DNA of 64,000 nt from Laetmonice hystrix (GCA_965235115.1 OZ249448.1:20460001-20524000), one strand, 5' to 3'; counted from the stretch's first letter, positions 1 to 50,699 are shown. Numbers and translations are program-made. Notes: generated by a model not told the origin, from the letters alone.

Positions 1-409
1 TGGCGACCTGCTGTATGACCTTGAATGGGATCTCTTCCTTGACTTGGAATGGGAATATGACCTTGACCTTGAGCGGCTGTAGCTGCGGGAGTAGCGTTTG
101 CGAGGTGGTGTTCTTGAGTGACTGCGGGAATGGCGCGAGGTCGGACGTCGCCGTGGGCTGTGAGACTTACTGCGAGACCGTAAACGACGTGGAGGCGAGT
201 AGCTTAATGAGCGACTCCTTGAATGAGCACGGCGCCGTACTGGGGACACACTAGGAGATCGCTTGGAACGTGGACTGGGAGCCGGGGCTTTATTCTGTCC
301 ATTGTGCTGTCCTGGGGAGCGATTTGTACTTGTGACTGGAGCTGTGGCGACATCTGGTGAGGGATGAGATTTCTGTGACCTTGTTGACCTCTGCGACCCT
401 CGCACAGAC
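1..409 (-). CDS. SRRM2: RS-rich distal coding exon of SRRM2 (alternative C-terminal extension), truncated by window edge
   Basis: Acceptor ccacttgtag|G at 410/409. It is open in the SRRM2 frame to position 1: ...RAHSRSRSLSYSPPRRLRSRSKSHSPRRR...RSYSRSRSRSYSHSKSRKRSHSRSYSRSP. Confidence 0.85.
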
Positions 410-3400
410 CTACAAGTGGAACACCAAGTCTGAGCTACAATTTCTAGTCAATTCACAAGTTTAGCTTTCCCTACTTCCTATAAACCCTGCCAAAGTATGT
501 TACACTGCGACGGAGAGTTACAAAATGTTCCCTGGAGAAGCACCTCACTCACCGCGTCTCGAAAATCAACCACCCCAAGGGTGTTAGTGGTAACCCCAGA
601 TGGGGTGTGAACCCTACACATACCCCGGAGACCATGGCTATCCCATGGTCCCGACAAATGTTACATTCTAGTATTATAACCTCCAACCCAACTCTAAACT
701 ACCAACTCTACCTGATGTCTCCATCTTCCTGACCAGCCTAGATCTATAGGCATTCCATCTCGAGACCAAAATATGACAAAGCTCTGCTTACAAATAACGA
801 ACAAAATTGTAATAGCTGTTACCCAATGTAAGATATTCATGATGCTAGGCAGACCAGACCTAAAAGGGTTGGTAGCAACGGTCAACCATAACAAAGGTCA
901 AATAGCTAGGTTGTTGTTGTTTTAAGTGATTCAGTACACACAGTTTATGCGACAAGACTAAGGTGACCTTACCATGTTGTACTAACGTTTCCAGCCTGAA
1001 ATGCTAGGAAAACAAAGAAACCATCAATGGCTATGTCTGCTGGGTGAACCAGCGGGCGCGCCCTGTTTGGGGGGTTCTGGGCCCCCCCCCCCCCGCCATA
1101 CAGGGGGTGACATCGACATTACAGGTTTTTTAATTCAACTTCAACCCCTCTTTTTGTACTGTTAAAAAAATCTCTTTTTGTATTGGATGGTTGGTGGTCA
1201 GTACTACATCAGCCTTTGTTGTGTGCAGTTAGTACAAACAAAGTACATGAACTTGAAGGGAATGTTGAACACAGCCAAGGTCTAGGGACAATGTAAGTAG
1301 GCGGTAACTGTACAACCTTATATGTTAACATGAGCCACTCACAATCAACCCCTCTTAAAACTTACACCACAACTTTCTGTTACACCCATTTTTATTTAAC
1401 TTACCATTACTCAAAGGTTTGCTCATTCCATGCTCGTAGTTTTTGACAAAAATTGCAAATTATCCAAGATAAAAAATTGTAATTCCAGACCTTAATTAAT
1501 GAGCTGCCAATATATAATATATGTACCGCTAGATGGAATTTTGTTGGATTTATTTGGGTAAGTTTAGAAACACCTGTACAATTGCTCGCGATGACAAAAA
1601 GTTATTATACACATTCTTCCAATTCACACAGTTTAATAGCGAGCTTTTTAAGACAGCCAAGGAAATTCGGCAGAGAGAGCAGTTTATAATGAAGTTTTCT
1701 ATGATGCATGCTTTAGTGGTGGTTCTACTGAATCTTGAACCTGGCCAAAGCATGCAAGCTCTACACAAGATCCTAGTCACCCTTGTGGCAATTATTCTAT
1801 TTTTTTGAGAATGACAATGTCTGTTAGATCATCCACCTTGGTCTTAGGACATTTTGATATTTCTCCCAAAAGCCATCACAAAGTCATTACAGCAGACATG
1901 ACTGTTCAAACAACAGGTAGTTGTATTTTCTCATCAAGTCACCTGAACATGGCCAAAATAAAAGATATCAAAATAACAAGGAATTCCTTTGTCTATGACC
2001 CCATCTACATCATAATCCCACTAAAAAGAACCTCTCCGACATTTAGAAGTTCTGACATGGCCTTAGAGTGGCACTAAAACTTCAGTGCCACAGAAAACAA
2101 GAAAAAATACAAGTTAAAGGGAGGGAAAACCCACACGGCAAATAAGGTTTCGTAGACCAAATGAAACACCAGGATTTACCTCAGGGCAATAAATGCCACA
2201 ATTACGTTGTCTGAATGAAGTAATTAATGTGTAACCGCCCGATGTATGACGCCGCTGGTTCTTACCTTGACCTGCTTGTGTGTTCATCAGAGCCGAATGC
2301 TGCACACCACGGCATATTGCGCAACATTACGTGTTACTCTGCTCGCAGACCTTGTCTACACGATACTTGGAGTCCCAACGTTTGTAAACGTCCGAGGTGA
2401 TGAACACGCAAGCAGGGCAAGGTAAAAACCAGCGGCGGACGGTTACACGTTAATTACTTCATTCAGACAACGTAATAATGGTATTTATTGCCCTGACGTA
2501 AATGCTGGTGTTTCATTTGGTCTATGAAACCTTATTTGCCGTGTGGGTTTCCCTCCCTTTAAGTCAGGTGAGTCAGGAGTTAACTAAGTAAAGAGGGCCC
2601 AGGTACTGGCAACCTTAGACAAGCCTTACCTTTTACTACCTGAAACACAAACATACGTGTTGCCAGATACTGGTAGGGTTAGCTAGTGGGTAGGGGGCAT
2701 GCAAGCCTTCGCGTACATCATATCATTGATAGGTGTAAGACTGAAGTACAAAACCACCAACGACCTGATAATCATGATTTGGGGGGGGGGGGGGGGGGGC
2801 TGTCCCCCAGCGGACTGGAGGTGGCCATATTGTATTTACAGTAGCTGATGTCGCCCCCTGTCTCATTTTCCTACTGGGGTCGCTCGGTCTAAACTACAGG
2901 TTAAATAAAGAGTGTGCTGGGGACCTTTTGTATGACAACTGTTAGCACTGAGGTTCATAAACACCTACTGACAACTGGACAGATACTGATACAAATCAAG
3001 AACAAAAATATACATATAAGATCAGGGACAAGACTTACGTTTTATTTCAGAAAGTATCAACGTTATGTGATCTTTTTTTTTTTAAACAAACTGTGCGACA
3101 TTACAGGCTCAGAAACCCTTGTATTTTTATGACAGAAAACATTTATTTAGTTGCGTCCTATCACTTCCTCTCACAAGGTATACAAGTATCAGAACCATGC
3201 ACGCATGTGTTACATCAACAGAGTGGTTAGTGGTACTACTCATCAAAAGGGGAAAAAAACCCTCTAGTTTTAGAACTGTTTTCTAATCTCCCCAAACCGA
3301 GTTAGATTAGCAGATGTATTAGCAGAACAGTAAAAATCACTTATATAACAGAACGTGATCGTGAGAGATAAATAATCAATAACATTAACATTAACAGGAA

Positions 3401-6400
3401 TCAAGTATTATTTGGAGCCTATAGCCAAAAACTATACTGGTCTTTAGGATAATTGCTGTACTGGTTTTGATTCAAGTTTAGGCTAAAGTGCTATACAGCA
3501 CATGTAATTCCAAGAAAAATTTGATTTACTTCAGATCCACTGAGAAAATAAATACTAAAAATAACGATGAACCAAACAAGGCCAAACATTAGTTAGCTTA
3601 ATTAAATAAATAACAAAAAATTAAAAAAAAAACAAATTAATAAACAGCTATTTGTAAAACCTTGCACATTAAAGCACAAATAGTGGGATTGATGAGGATC
3701 AGTAAGAGGATGCAGATTCCCTGATAAATGTGTAACAACTGGAGAGACCACTGTCCCAGAGACTATAACCTCTTGGTGGACACTCCACAGGACGTGCCTC
3801 AAGCAATAACGAATGAAGAATGCGGTCACAAGTCAAAAAGGACTTTTTATTGGTGGTTATTGCTGGACAAGGACCAAATACAGCCAAACAAAAAACCGAC
3901 CAGTTTTTTTGTTGACGTATTTTATCGTCCATAGATTTCAAGTTTAGATGTGCCATTTAGTATGTAAAACAAAATTGATACTAAGTACTGGCATAACTAT
4001 AAACAGTCAGTTTGTGAGTAAACCATTTAGTGGTGGAAATGATGATCATATGGTGTCAGTTTCTATGTCAATGAGCAGAGATTGGAATTGTTGAGAGAAC
4101 AATCGTTTCTAACTTGAGGCAGGTCGCCTATTCCATACTGCCCTACTGCCTGGATAGTGTCGAGTGTAACTTACCGTGGTGGTGATGGCGATGGTGTGTC
4201 ATGTCTCGGTGCTGGTCGAATCACTGGTGAGACATCCCGTCTACAATTACAAACCAAACCCTGTCAGAATATTTAATCCATTCCTATCATCAGGTCAAAT
4301 TTTACTGTTACCAATACATGTACCACTTTCTAAGCCTAGGATCCTGATTAGTAGTTTTGAGGAGCAAATGTGTTCCCATGCCTTATTCACACATCAATTG
4401 GGTCGATTTCTTAATATTATTTTGGTAGTGGTTTTTGGTCAAACCTAGTGCTTGAATCTAGTGCTATCACCATGGGTCCTAACCTTGTTTTAGATGGAGA
4501 TCTGCTGGCTGAAGAGCTTCTTGACCTTGACCTTTGGGATGGCCTTGACCTTGGCGAGTCTACCGGTGGCTTTCTCCCATGATGGGCAGGACTGGATGCG
4601 GCATGCTTTCCTCCATTCTGAGGCGACTTTGACTTGGATTTGACCTTGGGTGAAGGACTTGGGGACCGCTCAGAGGAGGATGCTGCCTTTCGCTTCTTTG
4701 CCACGTTTTCTTTATTCTTGACTTTCTTCAACTCTGGCACAGGGCTCACAGAACTGAAATTTTACAATCATTCATTCTTCAATTAGTATCCCAGTACTGA
4801 GTAGGTGAACACCGACTTTCTTTCAAATGATTTCTTTCTATGACATATCCCCAAGGAGAATGGAAGTGAAGAGTGCTGCCACCTACCTGTCAGAGTCAGA
4901 ACTACTCTCATTGTCTGCCGAGCTGGAGCTGGAGGACGGACTGTGGTGCTTGCGTTTCTTCTTGCTGGCTTTGTCCTTGACTTTCTCACGCTCCGGCGAT
5001 GCACTTGGTGACCTGGAGAAGCAACAAACCATGAGCCTCCGCTCCAACACTGCACTGACACCAAGCACAACTTTAGACCTGAGCAGACAGTGTTCTCAGT
5101 CGCAGCCAATCCCAGCAGTTGTTACAAACCATTCTCGGTCTCTAGCAACCAATCAGAGGTCGTAGCTGTTCGTTCAAGTCATTCTAATCAACCCTCAATC
5201 TAGTATCACTTCAGTTTAAAGAAAGGCTTCCAGTTACTTTGAAATACTCCTCTCAACAGATCAGCCTGGAGAACACCGTCCATCGAGCCAGTGCATAACA
5301 AACACCCTAGATGATGCTCAAGGCAGAGGACACTTAGGTGTGAAATGTGAGGCAAACAGAAACGAACAATAAAAGCTAGTTGATCCCTGAACCCCCGCCG
5401 ACCCTGAGGGTCAAACGACCCCCCTGGCTCGGATTATTCACCTGGGGTCTCAGTACCCGCGACTCTTCACAAACAAACCCACTCCTTTACCCAATGGACT
5501 CCTTTACTGCCAACACCCTTTTCATGTGTGCCCCAAGGACATTGGGGATCTTATGACAGAAAAACAACAGGCAAGGAGCTAGATAGTGTACAACACAAAA
5601 GGCAGCAAAACTGCAAACAAACATGCCCGGGAAAGGTGTGAATCGAGCTGATAATACACGACAGTTAGTACTACAGACGATCAGGACCCGCAATCAACCC
5701 GTTCAAACGTCAATCCATCTAACTGATCGTTGATTTCAAATAAACAGAGGCCATCTTTGGCCACTTACATTGTATTGTATGTATATAGGCAGAAATGGCT
5801 TTGTCATCCATGTTACAGAGTAAAACATCTAATGGATGAAAAAAAAACTACACGAGACACATGCTCTATCAATATACTGATATATATATATATATATATA
5901 CAGATGTACATGTATGTTATAGCAATGGACATCCGACTGAGTGTCCCAACAAATAAAGTGCAACAGGGCGGGCGCCTTCCTCACCGGTCTCATAGCACAT
6001 CATCACAGCAGCTACGCATTAAAAAGAGAAGGCAAATTGGACAGCATTAGATAGCACAACTGGCACCTGTCCCTGCGACCAACGACCCCTACCGTCAGCG
6101 ACCCCTAGCGAACAGTCCCACAACCACTGTCTCCATCCCGCTATTGTCAGACTTAGCCAGCAGTTGTACGGGCAAACCCCCTCCACGCCTGCCTCTCCAC
6201 CACACCCTACCACTCTTTGTTTCCCCCATACAATTAGCTTTCTTTGCCTTCCAACCGGTTCCAACACAATCTTATATTACTGGGGAACATTTAGTTATTG
6301 TCCTTTGTTGTAAGTGATTACAGAAAAATCTATTATTTTATTTTAAAACTAGTCTTCTTTGCTCTGATCTTTTCTATTAATTGAAGTGTTCCCAGATTGA

Positions 6401-9400
6401 GTTAGTTAGATATCGTTTTTATTGACTTGCCTTCAACTTGTGGTGTTTATGGGGGTAGCAGAGATTCTAAGATTAAAGTTACTTCTTATTACATCAGATT
6501 ACATCTCAACATTACCAGATGTCCGAGCTTTCCCCGCGTGGTGGGAAGTATTGGTCATGTAGGATCTGTACAAAGGTTTTCTTACTATAAATTGTGAGTG
6601 CAGTAAAGTAACTTCATCTGGTTTGTTACCTGCCAAATCCCCATACAAAACTCCAAGCTGCCATGCATACAGGACTGGCTCCTAATGCCATAACATAACT
6701 TGTATGCAGACGTAAATATATATATTGTCATATATATTCACAAATTAATGTAGCACTTGGAAAGCACATCTCTGGTTTAACTCATGTATGCATTACTAAA
6801 AGTACTTGTTCATGTGTGCAAATTCCTGGTGTGAATCACTTGGAATCCCAGTATACGACACGTATACTGGGCAACAAAACAGAATTTGTCATGGCCTCCA
6901 CAACCCAAGCCCAATTTTCCCGCCATTTCAAGAAGAACTTTAGACAAATTCTACAAAAACAACATCTGATTGAGGTCTGTTTATCGGTACAGTTTTTATA
7001 ATCCTCACACGAAACCAACTCCATGAACAGATGAGCTTTTCAAGCTCGGTTGAGTGAATACGGATTCCAAATGAAATATCTATGTTCCTTTTAGGACCGA
7101 CTTTTCTTACTTTTAGTAAAATCTTAAAATATATTCGTATCATCCCGTACATAAGTCCCAGAGCTGCACTTTTCAAAATCTAATGAAAACAAAAGTACTA
7201 TATACAGAAACCAAGTGGAGGTGGAGGTCTGGAGGGGGCTAAAATGACCTCCGTGATGGTAAAATCTATTACCAGGTTCTAAATCTTCACTCCTAAAATA
7301 ATACGTAAGGGTCAAAGAGACAGCCTCATCTTCATCAAACAAACCACACTTTTCAAAAAGATTAACTTCTACTGGCTTAATTAGTTGGAGCATAACTTGA
7401 AATCCAATACATACTAAAATACTGCCTCTGCTACAGCCACGTTATACCAGTAAAGCAACACAAAGTACGAAAATAATTCAAAAGTGCAGTACGTACAATG
7501 AACCATCACATGTTGGAATATCCACCGCTAGATAATGTCACACAGGTAAATCGTCCACAAAAACAAAACCCGGAACTGGTTGTTTCTACCACTTGTAGTA
7601 TTATTAGAGACGATGTCTTGATGATACAACTGACAACAGAAGTATCGGATTTACACTGTCGAGTTTTGCCATGATTATTGATTGAGTACTGGTCACCATT
7701 TCTTTGGCGAGTTTTGTCTGGGCCCCCTGTATTCTCAGCCGGATATCAACATGTCATTTGGTGTTCAATGGTGAACGATTCTCCCCACAAATTAACACAA
7801 CAGTAAGAAACCAAGCAACTTTTCAAATGCTAGGAACATTCGGACATGCTAATAATCGACGGAATACGTAAAAAAAAAATCGGTGTAGATCTAGGCTCAA
7901 GCAGAGACATGAGGTCAGTTCAACCTGCAACTAGGAAAGTGGTGTGAGCTGGTCCATTTCCAGCCTGTTTAGGGGTCATTAACTGTAACGTCTGTAGCAT
8001 ATCCCGTGTGTCTTGACCAATAGTATATAACCAGCAACATGTTATAGTTTGTCAACCTGCGTCACAGATGGGCGCCACCTTGAGTTTGGGCGGGAACACA
8101 ATGTCACTTACGTCGGCCGTCCTCCTCCCCGGGGTTGTGATGGTAAAGGTCAAACAGATTCTGTTAGAGACGGTGATGTAGTCCAGTTGAATCCCATCCC
8201 GCCCTGCCCTGCCCGACCAGCCCCGCCCAGGTAATAATTACGGCCGCCAATACCACTATATCTCCTCACCTACCGTCCCAATTATCATCCCCGACTCAAA
8301 ACTCCCAATGATCCTTGATTGTCATTCAAATTTTACATACAAGAGTCCTGCATCAGCATGTGTGATTGTTTGGTATTATAATCTCCCACAGCGAATGCCC
8401 ATTTCTGAGATAAATCTTAGGATAAAAATATTCTCAACCCTTTTGTTTTTTGCCCCTTTGTTCTAAGTGACAGGATATCTGCCATCAGGACCCCAGAACG
8501 GTTGGTCGGCCTGCCGCCAGAGTTCCCCAATTGGTCAGTTGCGGTACAAAATTAGAATCCCCTTTCAACGCTTTGTTTCATACCTTTTATGCTGCTTCTT
8601 GTTCTTCTTGCTCTTCTTCTTCCTAGCAGGCGACTCAGACCTGAAAGATCCAAAGTAGGGAGATATTTAACATTTTGGGCGGGAATGTTGAGGAGTTTGG
8701 TGCATGCAGTGGTCATGTGGGACTAGTCACTGACCCTTCACTAGAACACACCGAGTCCACCCGACCAGTATCAACCTAAGTGTGTGAAAACAAAGGTGGC
8801 TGAGCAACACTGTCCCTGCATGGGCTGAGCAACACTGTCCCTGCATGGGCTGAGCAACACTGCCCCTGCATGGGCTGAGCAACACTGTCCCTGCATGGGC
8901 TGAGCAACACTGTCCCTGCATGGGCTGAGCAACACTGTCCCTGCATGGGCTGAGCACACTGCCCCTGCATGGGCTGAGCAACACTGTCCCTGCATGGGCT
9001 GAGCAACACTGTCCCTGCATGGGCTGAGCAACACTGCCCCTGCATGGGCTGAGCAACACTCTCCCTGCATAGGCTGAGCAACAGTCCTTGCATGGACGGA
9101 GCAACAGTCCCTGCATAGCTTAGCCTCCATTATACCTGATCCCCTTTTAAATTACTTTCAACTCCGACCTTTGTTAAATCCCCTCAACCCCATTTGTTAA
9201 GACATTTCAATTAGAAACTACACGCCATTAAGGCCCCCTACAACGGGCCCAAACTGATCAAATATAACGTTAATACTAAACCTTTCTTGACAGACAAAAT
9301 CGCGCCGTCGATTGTTACAAAATATGAAAATTTACCATTATTACTTTCTTGTGGCGAATTTAAAAGATACCAGTTTAAAAATACTTGCAAAAATACAACT

Positions 9401-15400: not shown

Positions 15401-18400
15401 TACTGACTGATCGTGACAGTCTGACTGGACCAGCTGACTGGACCGACCAACTGATCGGACAGTCTGACTGCACCAGCTGACTGGACCGACCGACTGATCG
15501 GACAGTCTGATAGGACCAGCTAACTGGACCGACCGACTGATCGGACAGTCTGACTGCACCAGCTGACTGGACCGACAGACTGATCAGAGAGTCTGACTGG
15601 ACCAACTAACTGGACCGACTGATTAATCGGACAGTCTGGACCAACCAATCAGACTCTGACAGGACCGGCTGATTGGACTGACCGGACTAACCAATCGGAC
15701 AGACTGACTGACTGATAGACTGGCACCAGTAGCTGATCGAGTAGCTGGATGATACGGACCAGCCAGAGTGGGTAGAGGCAGTCAGTGGCCGACCTTTGGG
15801 AGAGAACACTGCATGGCGTGAGGGCTCAGGTTGGAGGACAAACACCGTCCTCCTCCGGCACTGACAATGACAAACTTCAAGGTCATTTCTCTCTTACTCA
15901 AGGTCATTTCTTTCTTTCCCCGATTATAAACAACTTCTAATAATTCTAATTCTAAACAATTCTAAGACATGTCACGCCATGCATTGACTCCCTTCTCTTC
16001 TCAATAGAATGGTGACAATCTGAACAATTGTTTCTTTTTAAATGTCAGTACCTTCAAAGCACACTTTTAACCCTTTCCCTCTAACTCTGTTGTATTGTCG
16101 TCATTTTAAAATTACTGCTTTTAGTATTACAAAAGCACTAAAGTAGCAATGATTGCTGCTAGACAGTGCAATTTTCAGTAATATATTCAAACACACATTA
16201 TGTTGATGTATATTAAATAAATAGCTATTATATTTTAGATACTTATATGTAAACTTCAGATACTTATATGTAAACTTTAGATATCTGTAAACTTCAGACT
16301 GAGAGGGAAAAGGTTGTAAATGCTTGGAAATCATCCAAGATTTAACAATAGAACAAAAAGCAGATGTATTTGGACAATGGCCATTGTCTGTCGTCGACTT
16401 ACCTGTGAGAAGGTTTGGGCAGCCCAAGTCTACAGCCATACCCACTCTTATTGATCAACTCTCTCATCTTGGAATGTCTGAATCGGGGCGGCGGTCAAAA
16501 TAAGAAACACCTCCTGCCCTGCTACAATGTGTTAGGTGACGGATACCATTTTCGTGTTTGGTTGAGTAGTTTTTGTTGTTGTTAAACCATGTCCAATAAA
16601 CAGAGCAGATGGTAAGGTCGCAGTGATATGTGTAAAACACCTACCCATCCCGCTTGTTGTGTTTCTTGTCCCTCTTCTTCTTTTTCTCCTTACGCACTGG
16701 GGAAGCACTCTCTGATCTGAAGGCCATCATACACAAACAGGTTACTATCGTGCTAAAATACAAACTAAGAAAGGAACTAGATCTACTAGATATAGACTTT
16801 GCGGTCCACAAGACGCCATTTTTGGGTATCAATTTTTGTATTTTGAATCGTTAAGATGGCTCCAGCGTCCAATACTTCAGTGCGTCTTATAGTCCACAAA
16901 GTACGGTACAAGACATGAAGTCGTCCAACCACCTGCCCAGTTTTCGACTCCTTCTTTGACCCAGTTTCAACTCTTGGTCATTTTTGATCATGAATCTTGT
17001 TATCTACTAACTACTAATTAACTAACCTGTACCAACACTACTTTACAATGAAATAGTTGTCCGTTATCATATGATTTAAATAAGTTATACATTAGTTTTA
17101 GGAGTCAAGATTGTTTCACTGGAGCGAATTCCCATTATGCAAGTCACTTAGGCCTATATCCTGAATTCTTTCTTAACAAATCTCTCTGAGATCTTTGTTC
17201 TTGCCGAAGCTCTGCCTGAGAAACTCTCAGAAAAATGAGATTTGTATGGCAGACCTTACCTGTCATCATCATCATCCCTTTTATGTCTTTTGCTTGGAAA
17301 ATAAAACGCCAAATCAGGTTACAGTGCTGGCCTCCCAACGTGAATGCTCAGGTACATTTTAATGGATTCTCTCTCACAAATTAAAGTTTTTCCTGATTTA
17401 CTTTCAGATCTTTGATGAATAGGCTTATAATTATGGGTGTATGGGAATAAAAGCATAATTTTGAAGTTGTCATTTCAACAAAGTATTGACTACAACAGTT
17501 CTACTGTGTTTATACACTAGAAGACCGCTCTGGCAATAGGAATTTTGCACGTACGTTGAAAAATAAATCTTTCATGAGCGTTTTCAAATATATTTCTTCC
17601 TTTCTATTGGGGGCATGGAAACTGTAGTAATACTGTGGCCTATTGAAATCGACCCCACTCAAACCGTTTCTCAATGTTTATGACGTTTCTAAGTCACCGA
17701 GCAAAACGTCATAGATACGAGATCACGTGAGGGCGACGATCTCCAAGAAACCGGCCCACACGTGGCCCACCCTGAGAGATACTTCCTGGCCCAACCCGAG
17801 GGGATCCTGGGCCATTTAACCTGCAAGTGTGAGCCATCACCCAACATTCGTCAATTAGAGCTCATGAAGGACTAGAGTAAGCAACACTTGATCCTCATCT
17901 AGCGCAGCCGCTGTGGGTATTGTACGGGTGATGAGACTGAGTGACTGGACTTCCCCACTGTTGTTTCATACTCCATGATTCACAACAGACGGTGAGTCAA
18001 ACGTGATTCACTGAGAATCTGCATTGTAAAAGTCAATTTACAGGTTTCTACGTATGTCTGGGGAACTCTGTGCTTCTTCTCCAATCACTGGAATCTGCCA
18101 ATATAAATATCTCCTTCCCCCAGTCTGTCCATGCCTGGACCAATACCTCCATCCCCTAGTCTGTCCTTGTCTGGACCAATACCTCCATCCCCTAGTCTGT
18201 CCTTGTCTGGGCCAATACCTCCATCCCCCAGTCTGTCCATGCCTGGACCAATACCTCCATCCCCTAGTCTGGACCACATATCCCGGACCTCCGGACCAGT
18301 GGGCCGGACGCCATCCCCGCAGTGTGACCGTTACCTGGCCACCCACCCAATGCCAGCCGTGGAAGCACTCCCTGACACCTTGATGTAGTACCGTTACGCC

Positions 18401-21400
18401 GCCGCCTCCATTCCCAGCCTCCCAGCCACAGCAGCTCCCAACGCCACGCTCCGCCGCCTCCTGGTGGCGCCCCCCTGTGGCAGTGGCCCGAACCCATCCC
18501 GGCGCGGTACACCGTGACGGTAGCAGCCCGTGGCCGGGGGCGGGCGGCGCCGGGCCCGGTACCACGGTCCGCGCCCTCCCCTGCTATCCCAGCCTCTCCG
18601 GTAAGTACCTAATGCACGCCCTCTGGCGGAACGCCCATGAAGCATTCTGCAGTGGTTGATGATGTCGGCGGCGACGCGTGGCTTGAGGTCATGATCACTT
18701 TTACCGAGATGAATGTGTACTGTGTTAAAACACGTGCAACACGTGCTTCCAGCACTGCCGCCTGCCATGACCATTATCTTCAAACACAATACTTCACCCA
18801 CTCTCTACTCCACAGCTGCGGCTGAGAACTACAGCTTTCTGCTCAAAATGCTGCAGTATTATTTCAAATCCGGTCATATTTTAACAAACCGAGTTCTATT
18901 CTACTGCAGTCTCCGCTATTAACCTGACGATGTTGATGATATACACATGTAGACATCTTTTTTCAGTTCAACAGTAACTTTATATAAGGTTTGGAATCGC
19001 GCAGTTTTATACATCTACGGTTAACCAAGATAGGACAGGAATAATCTGGTGACACTCCAGTGAAATGGCAGCTTACCGACTCCGTCGTCCACTCGATTTC
19101 TTTTTCTTCTTCTTCGCTGGAGGTGACGGGGACCGAGATGAACTTGACCGGACAATTCTGGTACAAAAAAGAAAGATAAAATTTTGAAAAACTTTTATTT
19201 AGTTATTGCTTTCGAATCACAGTGGATATTGAGGATAACAGAGTTTATCATTCGGTGGTGTAGGGGCTGAACACTACCTGGGTCAACCTTGGGGTGTATA
19301 AAGGGAGGTCACCAAAAATCCCTCCTTCACTCCCCCCTCCTAGTGCTGAATCGATCAGAACAGTACCAATAGGTTATACGGGCTACGGCTCAATCCAGGA
19401 CCACTGTGACGTACTGGAGGTGCCCTGGTACTGAGGACGATTTCACAGGACCTGGAGCAGTAAGGACCTCTGGCGCAGAGAGTCGACATGATCGACATGT
19501 CTCGATTCTCTAAAAGCCCTCAGAAACATTTCTAATCACGTCCTGCCGTGTTTGGTAATATTAAACCCTACTCCACGGTCTGACCTTGCGTCCACGTCTC
19601 CAAGGTCAACACCCCAGTGAGGGTGGCTATTCATACCGTTACCATTTCTAGAATTCCCACGTCTTGCTTATAATTACATCCGATGGTAACCGTATTCAGG
19701 AGTCCATAACCTTACGAGGTCGGCTGACTAACCTGATCACGGGGCTGGTGTCGATGGAGACTGATGGCCTGGCCGTCAGACCGCACGACCTGCCCACATC
19801 GGTCTCCGAACTTCTACTCCAACCTCTCCGATACCTACCACCGACCCTGGGGTACAAAATACCCCTACCACCGACCCTGGGGTATCAACTACCCCTACCA
19901 CCGACCCTGGGGTACCAACTACCCCTACCACCGACCCTGGGGTACCAACTACCCCTACCACCGACCCTGGGGTACAAAATACCCCTACCACCGGCCCTGG
20001 GGTACCTACTACCCCTACCACCGACCCTGGGGTACCAACTACCCCTACTACCGACCCTGGGGTACCAACTACCCCTACCACCGACCCTGGGGTACCAACT
20101 ACCCCTACCACCGGCCCTGGGGTCCCACCGACCCTGGGGTACCAACTACCCCTACCACCGATCCTGGGGTACCAACTACCCCTACCACCGACCCTGGGGT
20201 ACCAACTACCCCTACTACCGACCCTGGGGTACCAACTACCCCTACCACCGACCCTGGGGTACCAACTACCCCAACCACCGACCCTGGAGTACCAACTACC
20301 CCTACTACCGACCCTGGAGTACCAACTACCCCAACCGCCGGCCCTGGAGTCCCACCGACCCTGGGGTACCAATTACCCCTACCACCGGCCCTGGGGTACC
20401 AACTACCCCAACCACCGGCCCTGGGGTACCAACTACCCCAACCACCGACCCTGGAGTACCAACTACCCCAACCGCCGGCCCTGGAGTCCCACCGACCCTG
20501 GGGTACCAACTACCCCTACCACCGACCCTGGGGTACCAACTACCCCTACCACCGGCCCTGGGGTACCAACTACCCCTACCACCGACCCTGGGGTACCAAC
20601 TACCCCTACCACCGGCCCTGGGGTACCAACTACCCCAACCACCGGCCCCGGGGTACCAACTACCCCTACCACCGGCCCTGGGGTACCTACTACCCCTACC
20701 ACCGACCCTGGGGTACCAACTACCCCTACCACCGGCCCTGGGGTACCAACTACCCCAACCACCGGCCCCGGGGTACCAACTACCTCTACCACCGACCCTG
20801 GGGTACCAACTACCCCTACCACCGGCCCTGGAGTCCCACCGACCCTGGGGTACCAACTACCCCTACCACCGGCCCTGGGGTACCAACTACCCCAACCGCC
20901 GGGCCTGGAGTCCCACCGACCCTGGGGTACCAACTACCCCTACCACCGGCCCTGGGGTACCAACTACCCCAACCGCCGGGCCTGGGGTACCAACTACCCC
21001 TACCACCGGCCCTGGGGTACCAACTACCCCTACCACCGACCCTGGGGTACCAACTACCTCTACCACCGACCCTGGGGTACCAACTACCCCTACCACCGAC
21101 CCTGGGGTACCAAATACCCCTACCACCGGCCCTGGAGTCCCACCGACCCTGAGGTATCAACTACCCCTACCACCGGCCCTGGGGTACCAACTACCCCAAC
21201 CGCCGACCCTGGGGTACCAACTACCCTTACCACCGGCCCTGGGGTACCAAATACCCCTACCACCGGCCCCGGGGTACCAAATACCCCTACCACTGGACCT
21301 GGGGTACCAACTACCCCTACCACCGGCCCCGGGGTACCAACTACCCCTACCACCGGCCCCGGGGTACCAAATACCCCTACCACCGGCCCCGGGGTACCAA

Positions 21401-24400
21401 CTACCCCTACCACCGGCCCCGGGGTACCAACTACCCCTACCACCGGCCCTGGGGTACCAACTACCCCTACCGCCGACCCTGGGGTACCAACTACTACTAC
21501 CAACGACCCTGGGGTACCAACTACCCCTACCACCGGCCCTGGGGTACCAAATACCCATACCACCGACCCTGGGGTACCAACTACCCCTACCGCCGACCCT
21601 GGGGTACCACCGGCCCTATAGGTCTATTGGTACTTGAACATTTAGGTACCTAGAGTTTCCATCTGGGTTGGTATATATATCGGGGTACTTGTATAAAACC
21701 ACTCCTACAGTACCAGATCTGGCTCTGTGTGGATCCTCCAGTACCAAACCGGGTGGATTTGATTGTCACCCTGTGGGTACAACTTGCGGGGTGGGGTAGG
21801 GGAGCTGTTGTCCCGATCACCGGGCAGTCTGTAGGCAGTGTACGCACGGGACTGTATTGGAGGAGAGCTGGGTTAACCTCCGTACGCCTTGACCACTGAG
21901 TGACCGCCGCCGGTCAGTGAGAGGTCAATCGACTGTAGAGTAGCCACCACATTATTACCTATACCCCGCTTCTCATCATCTTCAGCCGGACCACCAGCTC
22001 AGAGCTCACTGCACGTCTCACCCTCCCGGCCTCACAGAATAAAAGACAATTAGGCCGATTAATTCCACTTTAATCTCGTTAGACGTTGACTGGGCACACC
22101 TGGTTCGCGCCAGTCGGGAGAAGGGTGGGCCCGGTGCTGGGTCGGAGCTGGTCGAAGGCTGACAGCTGCCATAATTCCTCCTGGCGGGCCATCTATGCTT
22201 CCCGGCAGGCACGCGATTAAAACTAATCACCAGGGTCAGAGGCGGCAGATTACTACACCTATTATTGGGATTATTTACTCTCTGCCGCCGCCACGGGGGG
22301 CGCCACTGTACAGGAAGCTCAGGTCTCGTTGGGTACACTCAGTACAGGAGCGTCACCTCCGTTACCATGGACACGACCTTCATGACATAGCCACTGAATG
22401 GGACGCTGGTGTCAAGGTCAAATACAGACACAGAAACTGACAAGGTGTGCCACGTCACAGGGCCCCCCCTCCGTCCAAATGTAAATAAGGACTAATTGGA
22501 AAAGACAACACAACCTTAATTAACTGATATCAGAGTTCAACTGTCTTCAGCATTTATCAGGTGCATCATCGTTATTCTTTTCCAATCTTCTTCTCGTATA
22601 AAAATTAATTTCCCCTATCAATTATTCTGCAGGTCAAATTATCAACAATAATCGCTGTTTTTTTAAGTTTCGATGTCACCACTTAATCATTGTCTTTGCC
22701 AATTACGTTTCATCAACAAAAAACTTCTCCACAGCTTTCTTCAGACATCAGAACTCTTAAAAACCAGTAAAACAGCAAATTTCCAAGGGTAGACATAGTC
22801 AGGAGTAAAAGATAGTGCGACGACACATTTGGAGACAGGTTAGTGACGTCAGACATATGGATCCGCCTGTATGGATCCGGTTTAGGACTTGAGTCTGGTT
22901 AGTGACGTCAGACATATGGATCCTGTTTAGGACTTGAGTCTGGTTAGTGACGTCAGACATATGGATCCTGTTTAGGACTTGAGTCTGGTTAGTGACGTCA
23001 GACATATGGATCCTGTTTAGGACTTGAGTCTGGTAAGTGACGTCAGACATATGGATCCTGTTTAGGACTTGAGTCTGGTTAGTGACGTCAGACATATGGA
23101 TCCTGTTTAGGACTTGGAGTCTGGTTAGTGACGTCAGACATGGATCCTGTTTAGGACTTGAGTATGGTTAGTGACGTCATACATACGGAGAGGACAAGTA
23201 GTAATGACCAGTGCTGTGTGATTCATGATAGGATTTAGGACTCGAGTATTGGCCAATGATACAATACATACGGCTATACCGTTTCTGAATAGAAGCACAT
23301 GTTTTTGCAAGTGACGTCACAGATAAAGACAGAGGACATATTGGCTGGTGGCATGTGATACATACGCATACTGTTTCTGGGCGCTGGCCGCCGCCCTGGC
23401 CGCCTTCTCCTTGGCCTTGCGGTCAGGGTCAAACGAGCTGCCGTCCACGTAAAACGGACTCAAACCAAACGCTTCATGTAGCTTCGCGTTCTTCTCCTGG
23501 TTGGCCTCGGCCACCTGGTGGGTTTCTTTGGAACTGAAAATACAAATGGGAAAGAAAGCTTAGTATGGGATGATCATAAATATACTAGCATCAAACAAAG
23601 AATTAATCTGGGATCATGTGGATATTCGGCAATTTTCTACTTTCATTGTTTTTTTCTTTGAATTGTTTTCAAACCTTATTTCTTTTCTCTGATGTTTGAT
23701 GTTGTTTCTTCTATTCCCCAATGCAATTCTTTCTAACATATGAACCTATAGAATCACTGGCATGTACAGTGAACATGACAGCTTTATTTATCAACCATTC
23801 GTCATAGACTGAGGATAATATCTATAACCTACACATGTTCTCACAGCAGAGTTCCAGGTTAGTAAGGTTAGTTACTAAGTAACCCACACCTTAACCTCAG
23901 CGGTATTGTCGATTTTATTCCACTCAAAGCGCTCAATATAATCACTGTACGCCGATTCCATGCCTCCGTTCGCGGATATAATTAGGTGCACGCCCTGACA
24001 CAGGTACGGCTCAGTTATTGGGCCCAGTGTGGCCGTCACAAATTGGCCGCTTCCATGAGGGCTGGGGGCCCGTGGAGGACGTCCCTGCGGGCCGGGGCTG
24101 GGGCCAGGGTGGGCCGGGCTGGGGCCGTAGAGGGGCCGTAACGGGCCGTGGGGCGGGCTGAGAATGGCAGTGTTGCATGTCAATCCCATACAAGCCTGCC
24201 CGCCCATCAATCACCCCACCCCACCACCTCCCACCGACCGTACTTCCTCCACCCCGGATCATCCTACACTGACTGGCCGGCACCGTCCGCCGTGTGGCCG
24301 GGGCGGGCGGGGGTCACCCAGCTGTGCCGTCCCGGGCTCACCCAGCCGTGCCGTCCCGGGCACACCATGCTAACAGGTGCGCGGGACACAGCTCAGGGCT

Positions 24401-36400: not shown

Positions 36401-39400
36401 GGTACAATACACACACCGAGGACAAACAGTAAGTCCACATGAAAACGGTCCAGACCACTCTGCCTGGCCACTGTTTGTGGTACAATATGCTAGCCTGTCA
36501 CTAATATACACAATACCAGTGTACAATACACACACCAAGGACAAACAGTAAGTCCACATGAAAACGGTCCAGACCACTCTGCCTGGCCACTGTTTGTGGG
36601 ACAATATGCTAGCCTGTCACAATACCAGTGTGCCTTGAACCAGGCCGTGATTGAGGTACATGGTGTATTATTACACAACAATAGATGTGAAGTGGCCACT
36701 GGTGGGAGGGGGTCCACAGTCAGACAGCCAGCCTGCCATGTGAAACCTTCCACAGGGCCCGTCTCAGTCCACTTACCAAGTTTTAACATTTACTACACGA
36801 CACACGATTAGGGCTCTGCATGATTGAATTCTTGGTATAATTCTGATGACAGTCGTCGTTCCACACCCATGTGATCATATAGCACAGCCGTTTACATAAC
36901 CTCGTCCCTCTGGCTCTGAGGTCAGGGCTAGTATTAGTGTATGTAGTTTATGTACAGTACGGTCACACCTCGGGGCTCCAGCTGGGATCCCAACCCTGAC
37001 CTCGGAATCGGAGGAGGCCAGCTGGGATCCCAACCCTGACCTCGGAATCGGAGGAGGCCGTGTAGTGGGACAAGTACAAGCCTCCCCAGTCACATTCCTG
37101 AGCATGAATTGATAATCCCGTGAGTTTCTGAGACCACTAGGCGTCCCGACCGAATGACCTCATGTGAGACCCACCCCACCCCTCAACCCGCCACAGAAAC
37201 TAGTGAATCCGCGGGACTTCTTGAACTTGAAGGCTCCTTTAGAGTCTCCCCTCCACCTATCAGATTACACAACAATATACTGTGAATGTTCCTTTGAAAC
37301 TTGTGTGGTCACAGGAGGTGGCCCTGGTCTCCACATCCCCAGTATGTGACTGGGTGTGGGCAGGTCGACCAGGCAGATGGTCAGGCACGGACTCCCCTCC
37401 CACAACACACAAACACGCCCCCTCTGGTCCCACCGGGCCAGCCAAAGCCAGGCATCAATCTAGCTAATGGGGTATTCACCCCCCCCCCTCCTCCTTGACC
37501 AGATCATCCCCTTATTTCGAAAGTCCTGAGTCCGTCCACTAACAGATGGCAGCAGCTGTCGGGATGAGCAGCTGTCCTGCTGTCTGTGGTGACAATCGCA
37601 GGCTGATGAGACAAGGCGGTGCTTCACACTGCCGTCAGGTGGCACCACCAATCGGTGCCGGTTGTCCAAGGATTTAATGCCTACAGTTCCTATTGCATGG
37701 TGGGTATTATCATCCACAGGCTGCAATGCTTCCCCTTAAATAAACACTTATAATTCCATATATCCTCTCACACTCCCTGGGAAGAAATTAAGTTAAACTT
37801 AAGTTAATTAAATATATGTTGTACATAATTGAAAAGATTTGCCACCCTGAAGTCCTCATCTGACAGGTTGGTACAACACACAAATCTTTTTCCAAGCATA
37901 CTGATGATACTCTGCTTGCATGCTCGTTGTAATATATGCTGCAATGTAGACATCCATCTTCCTCAGATTGGGGTAAACAAATCAATGCCTGACTGTGATC
38001 ACTTCAGTGCATGACTGAGCGCATCAGCTGAGCTCGACCAGCCCCCTGTGTGAGTGGGACTGAAGGGGCACGGAATCCTTTATCTACACGCGCAGCCTGA
38101 TACATCTGGTATCACATCACAACCTGCTAATAGTGCTATCCTTTCAGGTTGCACCTGCAAGGTAATCTCTGTCATGCACTGTATTGAGAAGATATGTGCT
38201 GCTTGGGCACAGAAAGACTTTGGGATTTTTCCAGATAACCCAGTAGTTTTTCCACGACTGCAGAGTGATCTTAGCATGACAACCTTAATTTCAAACAGTA
38301 TTAACAATCTTGAACAACCTAGAGCTTTTTGAATGCTCACAACAGATGGAAGGAAGATTCCCCTGCCCCTGTCAGGCTGACAAATCAAGCAATCAAGTAA
38401 TCTTGGCTGTAATTCTCAGCTCACCTAATTACGATGGGTATACCTGACATAATAATGACAGACCCTGTACAATGAAAGCTGACGGCAGGCCTAAAGTTCT
38501 AAACCTTGGCTCTGGCCAAGTGTCTTTTAGTACAATACAGGGTGTCTCAAATTGTGATGATAACACTTATATAGTGAAATCAAAGTGGACAAAAGAAAGG
38601 ACCACATATACTCACATTGGTCGACCAAATTCGTCCCGCTCAATGGTCCTTTCTGAGACTCCCTCTTTGTCCATCAACATTTTTCGGAAAGTTGATACCT
38701 TTTCTTCCACTTCGTCCTGTGAATATCTGCAATATAACCAAGCCACATTCAGTTACTCTATAAAAGCTTGCCATCAGTCTTGGTTGTACATTAAATTTTA
38801 AACCACAGAATCCTTTATAAATATTCCAGCTGCCTTGAATCCATCCCAATCTAATTACCCTGCATTTCTCAGTTATTGAGTGGAGTGTCGAAGGTTACAG
38901 TGCTGCCCCCTGGTTTATAACTAATTAGCACACGCCTGGCTGCTCCCAGCGTGTGTTATAGGCCCAAAACCGTGAAATTATTAGAGCCATAATTCACGGG
39001 TATGACGCGTCATGAATTGACCAATCGGAGAGGGTGCTCATTCGAATTCATTGTGTTTGCCTGTCCTCGCTTCAAGGTTGTCAATAGGTAGAACTAGCAA
39101 CTAATGGAGTGTTAATGGCTGAGACTTCGCAGTTGTTATAGAATTACGAGAAGAAACTCGTCTGTATAGTTCAGTTGGGTCGTTTCGATTCGATATGCCC
39201 ACAGCGAACTCTGTTTACATCGTTTAAATGACGCGCCGAGTCCATTTGCCTAGTAGAGGGGATGGCGCTATTGCTGAATGCATGGCCTTAATGTTCCGTC
39301 CAATCAGAAAGCTCCTTTTATAGGCTCGCTAAGTCAATGAAAGTCACGTGATAACGATCGACCAATAGTGAAGCGTGGTACAAATCGGCCGGTTCAAAGG

Positions 39401-40233
39401 TCATTGTGGGAGGCCCCCCCGACCTCAGATTGTAAACAAGATGTGGTGGCCACAGTTGCTGAATGAAATCGCCGGTAAAAGCTCAACTGGGTGTAGTTTT
39501 GGCACTGTTTGAATTGTTTATAGTTATAGGTTGTGTGCTAAAGTAAATAAAGCACTGCCAGAGCCAGTCTCGACGTTGTTCTGGCGATATAATGCACTCG
39601 CCTTCGGCTCGTGCATTATTTCGCCATAACAACGTCTCGACTGGCTCTGACAGTGCTTTATCCACTAAACATTGCATGGCCTTCCCTCCATATCCGCTGC
39701 CTGTCGTCTGATGGGTCCATTTCCCACAGTTACATGAGCATTGGTGGCTTGAACTAAAAAGGTATCAAGTACTCAAACTTAACCCCAATCCCTAACTGGT
39801 GACCATCAGACCTCTCCAAATCCAATTCCTATCTCTAGCACCTATTCTATTAACCTAACCCCCCACCCCATAACCTTTCAATGTATACAGTTTGAACACA
39901 ATGCACATATCCAGTACTGTCTAGGTCCAGTCTCACCTGATAGCTCATAGTCTGTTTCATATGGTTAGGTTTCCGAACAGGATTGAACACTTACCCTTGT
40001 TCCAACATAAGCTCTTGCATCTCAATGCACTTGAGCTCCACTTTGCGTTTTCGTTCATGATCCAAGATTTCCTGGTTTGGCTTCTTGTTGAGTTGAGCAT
40101 CGAGTTTCTTGAGCTCCTCTTCTGACTTGTAATCCACCTTATCTTTGTGGTGTCGGATGAAGGAGAGATTTCTCTGAACATACCCGTTTGTCCCGCTGCC
40201 ACGGGCCGTGTCCAGCCCAATACCATTGTACAT
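1..40233 (-). CDS. SRRM2: Serine/arginine repetitive matrix protein 2 family (Cwc21 domain; invertebrate Srrm234-type), spliced, 3' end extends beyond window start
   Basis: Coding exons (minus, all GT-AG): 40233-39995 (MYNGIGLDTARGSGTNGYVQRNLS...KRKVELKCIEMQELMLEQG, the diagnostic Cwc21/SRRM2 N-terminus), 38726-38616 (YSQDEVEEKVSTFRKMLMDK), 23533-23366 (KETHQVAEANQEKNAKLHEAFGLSPFYVDGSSFDP), 19157-19077 (IVRSSSSRSPSPPAKKKKKK), 16716-16645, 8640-8584, 5012-4887, 4753-4484, 4240-4175 (RDVSPVIRPAPRHDTPSPSPPR), 409-<1 (RS-rich). The frame is continuous across all junctions, all in phase 2. Confidence 0.93.
973..995 (-). other. Candidate 23-nt frameshifting microexon of SRRM2
   Basis: Minus strand reads ggtttctttgttttcctagcatttcag|GCTGGAAACGTTAGTACAACATG|gtaagg, giving a strong pyrimidine tract and a consensus donor. 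No expression data. Confidence 0.5.
2118..2558. mobile_element. Palindromic MITE with TTAA target site and AGGG termini (Kolobok-like non-autonomous DNA transposon)
   Basis: TTAA|AGGGAGGGAAAACCCACACGGCAAATAAGG ... CCTTATTTGCCGTGTGGGTTTCCCTCCCT|TTAA. The imperfect inverted arms are about 170 bp. TTAA with purine-purine termini is the Kolobok pattern, whereas piggyBac starts CCC. Confidence 0.75.
2630..2639 (-). other. Candidate 10-nt stop-codon microexon of SRRM2
   Basis: Minus strand reads gctaacc...cgtatgtttgtgtttcag|GTAGTAAAAG|gtaagg. After the phase-2 upstream exon it translates as (CG)G TAG TAA. Confidence 0.55.
8798..9122. repeat. 25-bp minisatellite, about 12-13 copies
   Basis: Unit GCTGAGCAACACTGTCCCTGCATGG repeated head to tail. 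Confidence 0.95.
14520..15720. repeat. 43-bp minisatellite built from GACC/GACT tetramers, with degenerate ends
   Basis: Core unit CAGCTGACTGGACCGACCGACTGATCGGACAGTCTGACTGCAC (period 43, e.g. 15001 to 15044). Confidence 0.95.
16233..16296. repeat. 21-bp tandem repeat, about 3 copies
   Basis: TTTAGATACTTATATGTAAAC-like unit. Confidence 0.8.
18111..18275. repeat. 36-bp minisatellite, about 4.5 copies
   Basis: Unit CCTCCATCCCCTAGTCTGTCCTTGTCTGGACCAATA. Confidence 0.9.
19828..21612. repeat. 30-bp minisatellite (roughly 55 units) interrupted by a 17-bp deletion variant
   Basis: Unit ACCCTGGGGTACCAACTACCCCTACCACCG, with variant GCCCTGGAGTCCCACCG. The unit lacks stop codons, which explains the long ORFs in the track. 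Confidence 0.97.
22838..23180. repeat. 45-bp minisatellite, about 7-8 copies, each with TGACGTCA
   Basis: Unit TTAGTGACGTCAGACATATGGATCCTGTTTAGGACTTGAGTCTGG. Confidence 0.95.
24445..25465. repeat. 113/117-bp tandem repeat, about 9 copies
   Basis: GG(T/C)TGGCCGTGGAG starts at 24541, 24654, 24771, 24888, 25001, 25118, 25231 and 25348. Confidence 0.95.
26874..26990. repeat. About 22-bp degenerate tandem repeat
   Basis: Recurrent GTTATATATTTCTAC. Confidence 0.75.
27350..27408. repeat. 15-bp tandem repeat x4 containing CCACGTGG
   Basis: CCACGTGG at 27353, 27368, 27383 and 27398. Confidence 0.9.
27503..27598. repeat. 37/38-bp tandem repeat, about 2.5 copies
   Basis: ACATTCTGTCAGTATTCACTGCCAACAGTCAGCAGC repeated. 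Confidence 0.85.
28318..29143. repeat. 23/24-bp minisatellite, about 35 copies
   Basis: Unit GGTCACAGAACGATTCCCAGGGCC with single-base deletion variants. Confidence 0.97.
30530..30752. repeat. 31-bp minisatellite, about 7 copies
   Basis: Unit AGTCAGACCAGCAGATAGATATCTGTAGTAA. Confidence 0.9.
31250..31875. repeat. (GACT)n microsatellite plus about 100-bp GACT-rich tandem units flanking an assembly gap
   Basis: (GACT)n runs up to 31369, and the unit GACTGAGAGATTGACTGATAGTCTGCGCTAATACCG occurs x3 from 31556. Confidence 0.9.
31370..31555. other. Assembly gap (N run)
   Basis: Contiguous N bases. Confidence 1.
32226..32291. repeat. 10-bp tandem repeat (GTACGGTTCG)n, about 6 copies
   Basis: Direct reading of the sequence. 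Confidence 0.95.
33385..33853. repeat. 96-bp tandem repeat, about 5 copies
   Basis: AAGTAAACGTC at 33396, 33492, 33588, 33684 and 33780. Confidence 0.95.
34785..35515. repeat. About 26-bp degenerate minisatellite
   Basis: Unit GGACACTGACTGTTCATCATATTCTG with length variants. Confidence 0.92.
36040..36625. repeat. 117/119-bp tandem repeat, about 5 copies
   Basis: GGACAAACAGTAAGTCCAC at 36067, 36184, 36303, 36420 and 36539. Confidence 0.95.
36978..37058. repeat. 40-bp direct duplication
   Basis: CCAGCTGGGATCCCAACCCTGACCTCGGAATCGGAGGAGG x2. Confidence 0.9.
39548..39660. mobile_element. Long hairpin, probably the core of a non-autonomous foldback element (resembles CryptonV-type palindromic repeats)
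   Basis: The 50-bp arms TAAAGCACTG...ATAATGCAC / GTGCATTAT...CAGTGCTTTA have 5 mismatches around the loop TCGCCTTCGGCTC. The family assignment is from recollection only. Confidence 0.5.
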
Positions 40234-49943: not shown

Positions 49944-50699
49944 TTTTGTTACGTCTTAGACTGGGGCAGAAACCCAAAAAGTTTATGATAAAAGAGTTAG
50001 GCTAGTCTGTGACCGGGCCCGCTTGGCACTGACACGGTCAGAGTAAACTGCACGGCCACGGCTGGGATGGCACTGGCACAGAATCGACGACAGACCCGCT
50101 GAGAAGCGTGGTTTGGACTGGAGCTGTCAAAATTAATCAAAGTCGGTGAATTCCAGCGTGTCGATAATTCCTGAACTGACCAACAATAACTTTAGTTCAA
50201 TGGGTGAATAAAGTGAGAAACACACGTCTTTCGTTTCACCGACGCAACTGCAAAACTTATTTCACCACTTTGCAGCAACTTGCATGACAGAAAGGTGAAT
50301 CAGTCATGGCGGAAATAACCACACTAATGACGCCCTCTGGTGACAAGCTGATAAAGTTTTTAACATAGTCCCCTGGTGGAAAATTTATGTACTATTAGTT
50401 ATGGTTTCTCGCTACTAAACACATTGAAAAAAAATAAGAGCGATCGTTTTTCAGTTTCACCCCAGCACAACTAAAAATATTAATAAGTGACTGAATAGGA
50501 TTAATTTAATATAGCGTTATTTCAAGTTGAAATAATAACATTTGGCAACTAAAACAAGAAACGGCAGTGATACAGGTAAATATATTTTCACAATTAAATC
50601 AAGTTTCCTACCTGCTACCTGAATGTGCTGATGAAGAGTTTCCGAGACTAAGTAAGAAGGTACACCACATTGAACAAAGACAACATAAAATCTTTAAAA
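49944..50699. promoter_or_regulatory. Head-to-head (bidirectional) promoter region between SBDS and the zinc-finger gene
   Basis: Divergent start codons are 756 bp apart, with CpG-containing segments between them. Confidence 0.6.

Follow-up and report, generated by a model that had tools for sequence, protein, structure and literature searches.

Srrm234 is the ancestral gene of the neural microexon programme, and the rationing of its isoforms is known in detail only for Drosophila. The fly gene (CG7971) has a first eMIC-encoding exon, whose donor is shared, and behind it a proximal terminal or "poison" exon and, farther on, a distal eMIC exon, with control by Elav/Fne; the isoforms that lack eMIC also contain the first eMIC-encoding exon and are expressed for the most part outside neural tissue (Torres-Mendez et al. 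2022, PMC8797185). This layout of alternative last exons is regarded as the ancestral bilaterian state in a review (PMC10551640). More generally, poison exons with autoregulation by alternative splicing linked to nonsense-mediated decay (NMD) are documented in splicing factors that are serine/arginine-rich (SR) or SR-related (Lareau 2007 and others, via bioRxiv 10.64898/2026.09.14.751627), and a shorter human SRRM2 transcript is on record (PMC2817002). The present analysis deals with the Srrm234 gene of Laetmonice hystrix, carried by the minus strand of a window of 64,000 nucleotides (nt) of the sequence OZ249448.1, here called C18 (20460001-20524000; positions are counted from the first letter of this window), to which 30 kb were added on the low-coordinate side.

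The reading favoured here, with a probability of roughly 55%, combines a single Srrm234 gene, an intron 8 with one or more frame-ending alternative exons that would tune the long form, and a neural decision that would be taken at the last exons. Intron 8 probably contains at least one such exon, the candidates being a unit at 2639 and a 23-nt cassette at 995-973. The use of either unit would lead to a cwf21-only protein of 397 amino acids (aa) or to a premature-stop transcript acting as an NMD substrate. These exons would set the amount of long Srrm234, not neural identity; the neuron-specific decision would come later, in the choice between two last exons situated beyond the window, by analogy with Drosophila.

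The gene is a single pre-duplication Srrm234, in the non-vertebrate state. A motif scan detected a cwf21-type start at 40233, and the translated exon 1 matches residues 1-70 of human SRRM2 (E=1.2e-24) and the cwf21 protein of S. pombe (E=2e-10) in a phmmer search against the PDB; the match to the Pfam cwf21 family (PF08312) is incomplete, since an intron interrupts the domain. The 627-Mb genome yielded one cwf21 match and one SRRM_C match, which share a contig and a strand and are separated by about 44 kb. The locus is the 3' part of the sole Srrm234 (SRRM2/3/4) gene of this genome, a pre-duplication gene combining the N-terminal cwf21 domain and the C-terminal SRRM_C/eMIC region of the family. 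The original prediction had also named the gene Srrm234/SRRM2, and the cwf21 score and the single cwf21 and SRRM_C loci bear it out, but for a reason other than the one put forward. Indeed, the proposed likeness of the HDTPSPSPP end of exon 8 to the C-terminus of human SRRM2 fails: exon 8 has no PDB match at E<=10 with phmmer, and neither exon 8 nor exon 9 matches any of the PDB sequences, which include the full-length 2752-aa human SRRM2 chain. The SRSLSYSP motif, present in the C-terminal region of human SRRM2, is found in exon 9, not in exon 8, and is conserved among the invertebrate orthologs in an alignment composed without a human row. A separate gene starting with the exon at 409, one of the outcomes that had been named as fatal to the prediction, is ruled out by the single-locus matches and by the ortholog alignment, in which this exon aligns with the contiguous middle of single-protein orthologs. 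Used as a query against the protein collection, exon 9 retrieved no match, not even a protein of its own species.

The exon model (Table 1) was built from ortholog tblastn and frame-consistent AG/GT boundaries; the minus strand of 1-4600 was read directly and each splice path was translated. All internal exons are in phase 2-2. Exon 8 (4240-4175), an ordinary exon of phase 2/2, has the acceptor ttgtag/A and the donor CACG/GTAAGT; its place is taken by a short exon rich in serine and proline (SP) in Saccostrea, Dreissena and Pomacea. Exon 9, which follows the acceptor ttgtag/G at 410/409, measures 426 nt and ends 16 nt past the window edge, at C18:20459984. Exons 8 and 9 are internal and contiguous in the ortholog alignment. 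The positions first proposed for the 66-nt exon, its GTAAGT donor, the 10-nt and 23-nt units and the 409 acceptor are all correct on the minus strand, and the short protein announced at about 397 aa agrees with the model that contains the 57-nt exon at 8640-8584, whose 19 aa bring the short product to 397 aa.

Translation of the four paths that leave the 4175 donor (Table 1) equally confirms the frame logic originally proposed for them. The 4175-409 junction is the only one that stays in frame, and we infer that it is the main productive junction, joining the 397-aa cwf21 (Cwc21-like) half to the conserved C-terminal half. As in poison exons, the premature stops lie upstream of further junctions, at least two of which follow in each case.

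The two candidate units of intron 8 have splice scores equal to or above those of the accepted exons of the gene, as measured with a crude consensus position weight matrix (PWM). The 10-nt unit produces CG/G TAG TAA, that is, two in-frame stops in the only frame that the upstream exons can deliver; the unit at 2639 could equally act as a cassette of 10 nt or open an alternative last exon served by the AATAAA at 2484-2489. The 23-nt unit reads GCTGG...CATG. Unlike the neural microexons dependent on eMIC/SRRM4, which measure 3-27 nt, usually a multiple of 3, and keep the frame, the units of 10 and 23 nt break it or carry stops. Across 94 kb of minus strand, four candidates of at most 30 nt reach such scores, and two of the four are located inside the 3.8-kb intron 8; a first-order Markov simulation of the intron gives a mean of 0.10 and a nominal P(>=2) of 0.01. 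An origin from repeats was considered for the candidate exons and is ruled out, each being single copy in the genome. An Rfam scan of 1-3602 detected no family, and metagenome contigs contained no match to exon 9 or to the exact 31-nt pattern of the 23-nt unit. As to the surroundings of these units, the AATAAA at 2484-2489 is supplied by a palindromic repeat resembling a miniature inverted-repeat transposable element (MITE) and lies 150 nt downstream of the 2639 acceptor; the copies of this repeat also match the opposite strand, at 76-80%. The minus strand of intron 8 carries in addition a run of 20 C (~2781-2800) and a run of 11 G (~1085-1095), each a little upstream of one candidate microexon, in otherwise single-copy sequence.

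The gastropod Pomacea canaliculata, whose exon layout mirrors the Laetmonice locus, provides a comparable arrangement. Its RefSeq isoform X4 (XP_025092137.1, 316 aa) ends with ...KTR-C-stop, and the homologous intron of 2.46 kb contains exactly one fitting site, ttatgatttgtag/GTGTTAATGACAACTCGCACAAG/gtaatt (tag/GTGTTAATGA...). In this stop exon the in-frame stops stand in tandem; a GT comes 23 nt on and an AATAAA 131 nt downstream. The occurrence of two strong candidates in one intron, both single copy, the stop exon of Pomacea X4 and the cwf21-only proteins annotated in Dreissena and several flies speak for stop exons in intron 8.

Four sequencing runs from one study (X1-X4), none of them recorded as RNA, were explored by word sampling only. 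Runs X1 to X3 contain 81-93% of the sampled words of 1-4800 in about one genome's worth of contigs and behave as DNA. Run X4, with 59 million letters, contains 32% of these words and 100% of the exon 9 words, as a transcriptome would. The exons explain about 14% of the words of 1-4800, which leaves about 0.9 kb of extra, intron-annotated sequence in run X4; this excess fits a read-through tail or retained introns.

Several observations weigh against the favoured reading, and several of them benefit its best competitor, according to which intron 8 is plain and constitutive, the units of 10 and 23 nt resemble spliced exons by chance and never serve as such, and poly(A) sites within the intron are all inactive. 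The units are candidates predicted from the genomic sequence, and the RNA nature of run X4 is deduced from its word content. The PWM thresholds were fixed after the candidates had been seen, which makes the microexon statistics post hoc. Intron 8 has no nucleotide similarity with its Pomacea counterpart, and searches of the protein collection and of metagenome contigs found no close relatives. The stop exon of Pomacea X4 is either a cassette or a terminal exon, between which the protein cannot tell, and the homologous introns as assigned in Saccostrea (105 nt) and Dreissena (73 nt) have no room for such exons. Microexons are poorly recognised without dedicated enhancers, and the sequence read in the 40 nt upstream of either acceptor contains no TGC/UGC, the motif of neural microexons dependent on eMIC/SRRM4. 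On these grounds a plain intron has a fair probability, though a lower one than the favoured reading; against it stand two candidates in one 3.8-kb intron where about 0.1 is expected, the tandem in-frame stops in the only readable frame, the RNA-supported annotation of a stop exon in the homologous intron of Pomacea, and the ~0.9 kb of 1-4800 that run X4 holds beyond the exons.

The last exons of the gene were found in the right order and frame 1.3 and 3.8 kb past the window edge (Table 1). The SRRM_C family (PF15230) matches exon 10 with its positions 29-55 (E=7e-7, 30.2 bits for a cut-off of 27) and the distal last exon with its positions 56-67 (E=0.0017), and the C-terminal region (...SPSxLDRRRIT-SARKRPxPYYRPSP...) aligns with Haliotis X2, Saccostrea and S. 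purpuratus. In Haliotis asinina, the RefSeq isoforms X2 (eMIC) and X4 (non-eMIC) differ exactly by their last exon, and the same is true of Pomacea X1 and X3. No AATAAA or ATTAAA is present between the proximal non-eMIC exon and the eMIC exon, the only related signal being an AATACA about 300 nt past the stop; for this reason the proximal exon may serve for the most part as an internal exon that carries a stop. The two last exons span C18:20456062-20458696, and about 0.8 kb between them is filled by tandemly repeated units of some 50 nt (...cagattatcttggcaaacagagattgtcttagcaaacagaggccacttaa...).

These exons bear directly on the neural part of the original prediction, which proposed a layered off-switch, made of proximal polyadenylation just after the 4174 donor and of two poison microexons, that would restrict the whole extension rich in arginine and serine (RS), eMIC included, possibly to neurons. 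Its frame logic is correct, and both the read-through stop (CGG TAA) and the AATAAA signals that it invoked are present; the density of AATAAA/ATTAAA reaches 2.1 per kb in intron 8, compared with 0.3-0.9 per kb for the remaining long introns. The two strong microexon candidates and the short cwf21-only products of other species speak for it as well. The stop, however, is generic, because a phase-2 intron combined with a GTA or GTG donor makes the next codon TAA, TAG or TGA; 8 of the 10 introns of the gene give such a stop on read-through. Moreover, long non-eMIC isoforms with the equivalents of exons 9 and 10 exist in orthologs (Haliotis X4, Pomacea X3 and the Logan transcripts P0157 and P0159), and the Drosophila non-eMIC isoforms are found mainly outside neural tissue (PMC8797185). 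The neural choice described for the family takes place downstream of the 4175 donor, between last exons that are here beyond the window, which weakens the neural interpretation of this donor and makes the off-switch improbable. Since orthologs have long non-eMIC isoforms and the fly non-eMIC forms predominate outside neural tissue, the neuron-restricting step is, by analogy, more likely to be at the last-exon choice than at the 4175 donor. The idea that the eMIC isoform would promote the inclusion of two poison microexons in its own pre-mRNA, ahead of the eMIC-coding exons, and would thereby end or destabilise its own message, as a negative feedback layered on the last-exon switch, is very unlikely; Pomacea has a positional counterpart.

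Table 1. Exons, intronic signals and splice outcomes of the Laetmonice hystrix Srrm234 gene (window positions, or C18 coordinates beyond the window)
Feature	Position	Strand	Remarks
Exon 1, start codon and start of cwf21 domain	39995..40233	-	phmmer/Pfam; single genome copy
Exon 2, remaining cwf21 region	38616..38726	-	ortholog tblastn; splice sites and reading frame verified
Exon 3, conserved ...NAKLHEAFGLSPFYVDGSSFDP... motif	23366..23533	-	ortholog tblastn, 61-67% identity
Exon 4	19077..19157	-	frame-consistent AG/GT model
Exon 5	16645..16716	-	frame-consistent AG/GT model
57-nt Lys-rich exon SESPARKKKSKKNKKQHK	8584..8640	-	phase 2-2 scan of 11.6-kb intron
Exon 6	4887..5012	-	splice-site/frame model
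Exon 7, RS/SP-rich	4484..4753	-	splice-site/frame model
Exon 8, 66 nt, ends ...HDTPSPSPP-CG, phase 2	4175..4240	-	sequence read and translation
Intron 8, 3765 nt, GC 0.40	410..4174	-	holds all proposed alternative events
AATAAA signals	3846-3851 and 3142-3147	-	could end read-through transcript
AATAAA followed by T/GT-rich stretch	3041..3046	-	could end read-through transcript
Candidate 10-nt exon GTAGTAAAAG, cag/GTAGTAAAAG/gtaagg	2630..2639	-	PWM acceptor 3.6, donor 11.3
Palindromic MITE-like repeat, ~450 nt	2114..2562	.	at least 40 copies, many contigs, 89-92% identity
Candidate 23-nt frameshifting exon, ttcag/GCTGGAAACGTTAGTACAACATG/gtaagg	973..995	-	PWM acceptor 6.8, donor 9.3
Exon 9, RS-rich, SRSLSYSP	1..409	-	aligns with internal region of Haliotis, Pomacea and Paralvinella orthologs
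Exon 10, encodes SRSPRRDSRSPSIRRRKGSPSHLDRRRIT	C18:20459845-20459756	-	first part of SRRM_C, ends ...HLDRRRIT
Proximal last exon, non-eMIC, RSPYRRSGDRYSS...RDRHY-stop	from C18:20458696	-	622 aa total
Distal last exon, eMIC, SARKRPVPYYRPSPASS...-stop (SARKRPVPYYRPSP...)	from C18:20456230	-	624 aa total; AATAAA at 20455771
Outcome: read-through at 4174, CGG TAA	TAA 4171..4173	-	397 aa, stop 4173
Outcome: 10-nt unit included, with or without 23-nt unit	stop 2638		397 aa
Outcome: 23-nt unit alone	stop 206 in exon 9		frameshift, 472 aa
Outcome: direct 4175-409 junction	stop in last exon		open frame, 622 or 624 aa

Short products of Srrm234 are found in other species. In Dreissena, the RefSeq product of 333 aa corresponds to read-through of the donor of the 73-nt intron (GG/G TAG), two exons upstream of the SRRM_C exon, and for Musca, Glossina and Drosophila takahashii the annotations include cwf21-only products of roughly 300-360 aa. 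The nemertean Tubulanus polymorphus (OZ123229.1, L009:10001-11077) has an intronless cwf21-only gene of 358 aa, located between unrelated genes, which resembles a retrocopy derived from a short Srrm234 transcript. In Mytilus, the 226-aa product represented by P0305 and P0306 (21 Logan contigs) ends with ...HKHDR-YVKR-stop at an earlier intron, and one model from this organism shows a 5-aa insert, YIYKS, at the same HKHDR junction. Srrm234 seems prone to truncating events at several introns. A microexon of a different type, 24 nt long and encoding 8 Lys/Arg-rich residues (196-203), is alternative in two gastropods (Pomacea, L011:23666-23686; Haliotis, isoforms X1/X3 versus X2/X4); its equivalent was sought in Laetmonice between exons 4 and 5 (19076-16717) and was not found.

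Two further observations concern the rest of the window. Long, coding-looking tandem repeats occupy 14500-15650 and 18000-21650, inside Srrm234 introns; several of their frames are free of stops on both strands, with a GC content of up to 0.63, as exemplified by an open reading frame (ORF) of 657 aa, (LGYQLPLPPT)n/(PGVPTTPTT)n, at 19664-21637 on the plus strand, and are probably minisatellites. Upstream of Srrm234, exon-like ORFs at ~47550-49960 on the minus strand look like those of an SBDS-type ribosome-maturation gene.

The Srrm234 gene and its 3' switch are already known, as are poison exons and intronic polyadenylation in splicing-factor genes. The upstream truncation point predicted here for Srrm234 is visible in public annotations, and no discussion of it was found in the searchable literature; the Pomacea, Dreissena and dipteran annotations suggest that short forms are widespread but unstudied. 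If the stop exons of intron 8 are used, lophotrochozoans would gain a second, upstream decision point, with a Cwc21-like core-spliceosome protein on one side and the long RS/eMIC forms on the other. If they are unused, the locus adds one more clear case of the Srrm234 layout already known.

The closest mechanistic parallels differ from this locus in several respects. Vertebrate recursive-splicing exons, reportedly described by Sibley et al. in 2015, are said to turn into poison exons when their downstream donor wins. The unit at 2639 resembles them in that its acceptor AG abuts a GT at 2640/2639 (cag/GTAGTA), with a stronger donor 10 nt on, but the reconstituted donor ACG/GTAGTA is weak and the intron, at 3.8 kb, is not very long. 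With the poison exons of SR genes, the locus shares the splicing-factor nature of the gene, short alternative exons and a premature stop upstream of junctions; the classical examples, however, are longer and ultraconserved, whereas the present ones are candidate microexons of 10 and 23 nt read in one genome. The shorter human SRRM2 transcript (PMC2817002) indicates that the family also makes shortened transcripts in vertebrates, no homology of mechanism being claimed.

The comparison with Pomacea X4 is more direct. In both organisms the intron directly before the SRSLSYSP exon carries an exon that opens with stops, a RefSeq model in Pomacea and a candidate predicted from the genome in Laetmonice, with G TGT TAA TGA in the former and G TAG TAA in the latter. 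The Pomacea cwf21-only protein has 316 aa as compared with 397 aa, its GT stands 23 nt past the acceptor, and its stop exon is 370 nt away from the next exon, against 2230 and 586 nt in Laetmonice. With respect to Drosophila, the last-exon switch lies here 1.3-3.9 kb past the window instead of at the 4175 donor, no canonical AATAAA/ATTAAA follows the proximal last exon ahead of the eMIC exon, and the candidates of intron 8 are placed two exons upstream of the switch, an arrangement not described for the fly. The overall organisation is nevertheless that of Drosophila Srrm234 (CG7971; Torres-Mendez et al. 2022, PMC8797185): a single gene with a cwf21 N-terminus, whose shared-donor first eMIC exon is followed by a proximal stop exon and a distal eMIC exon.

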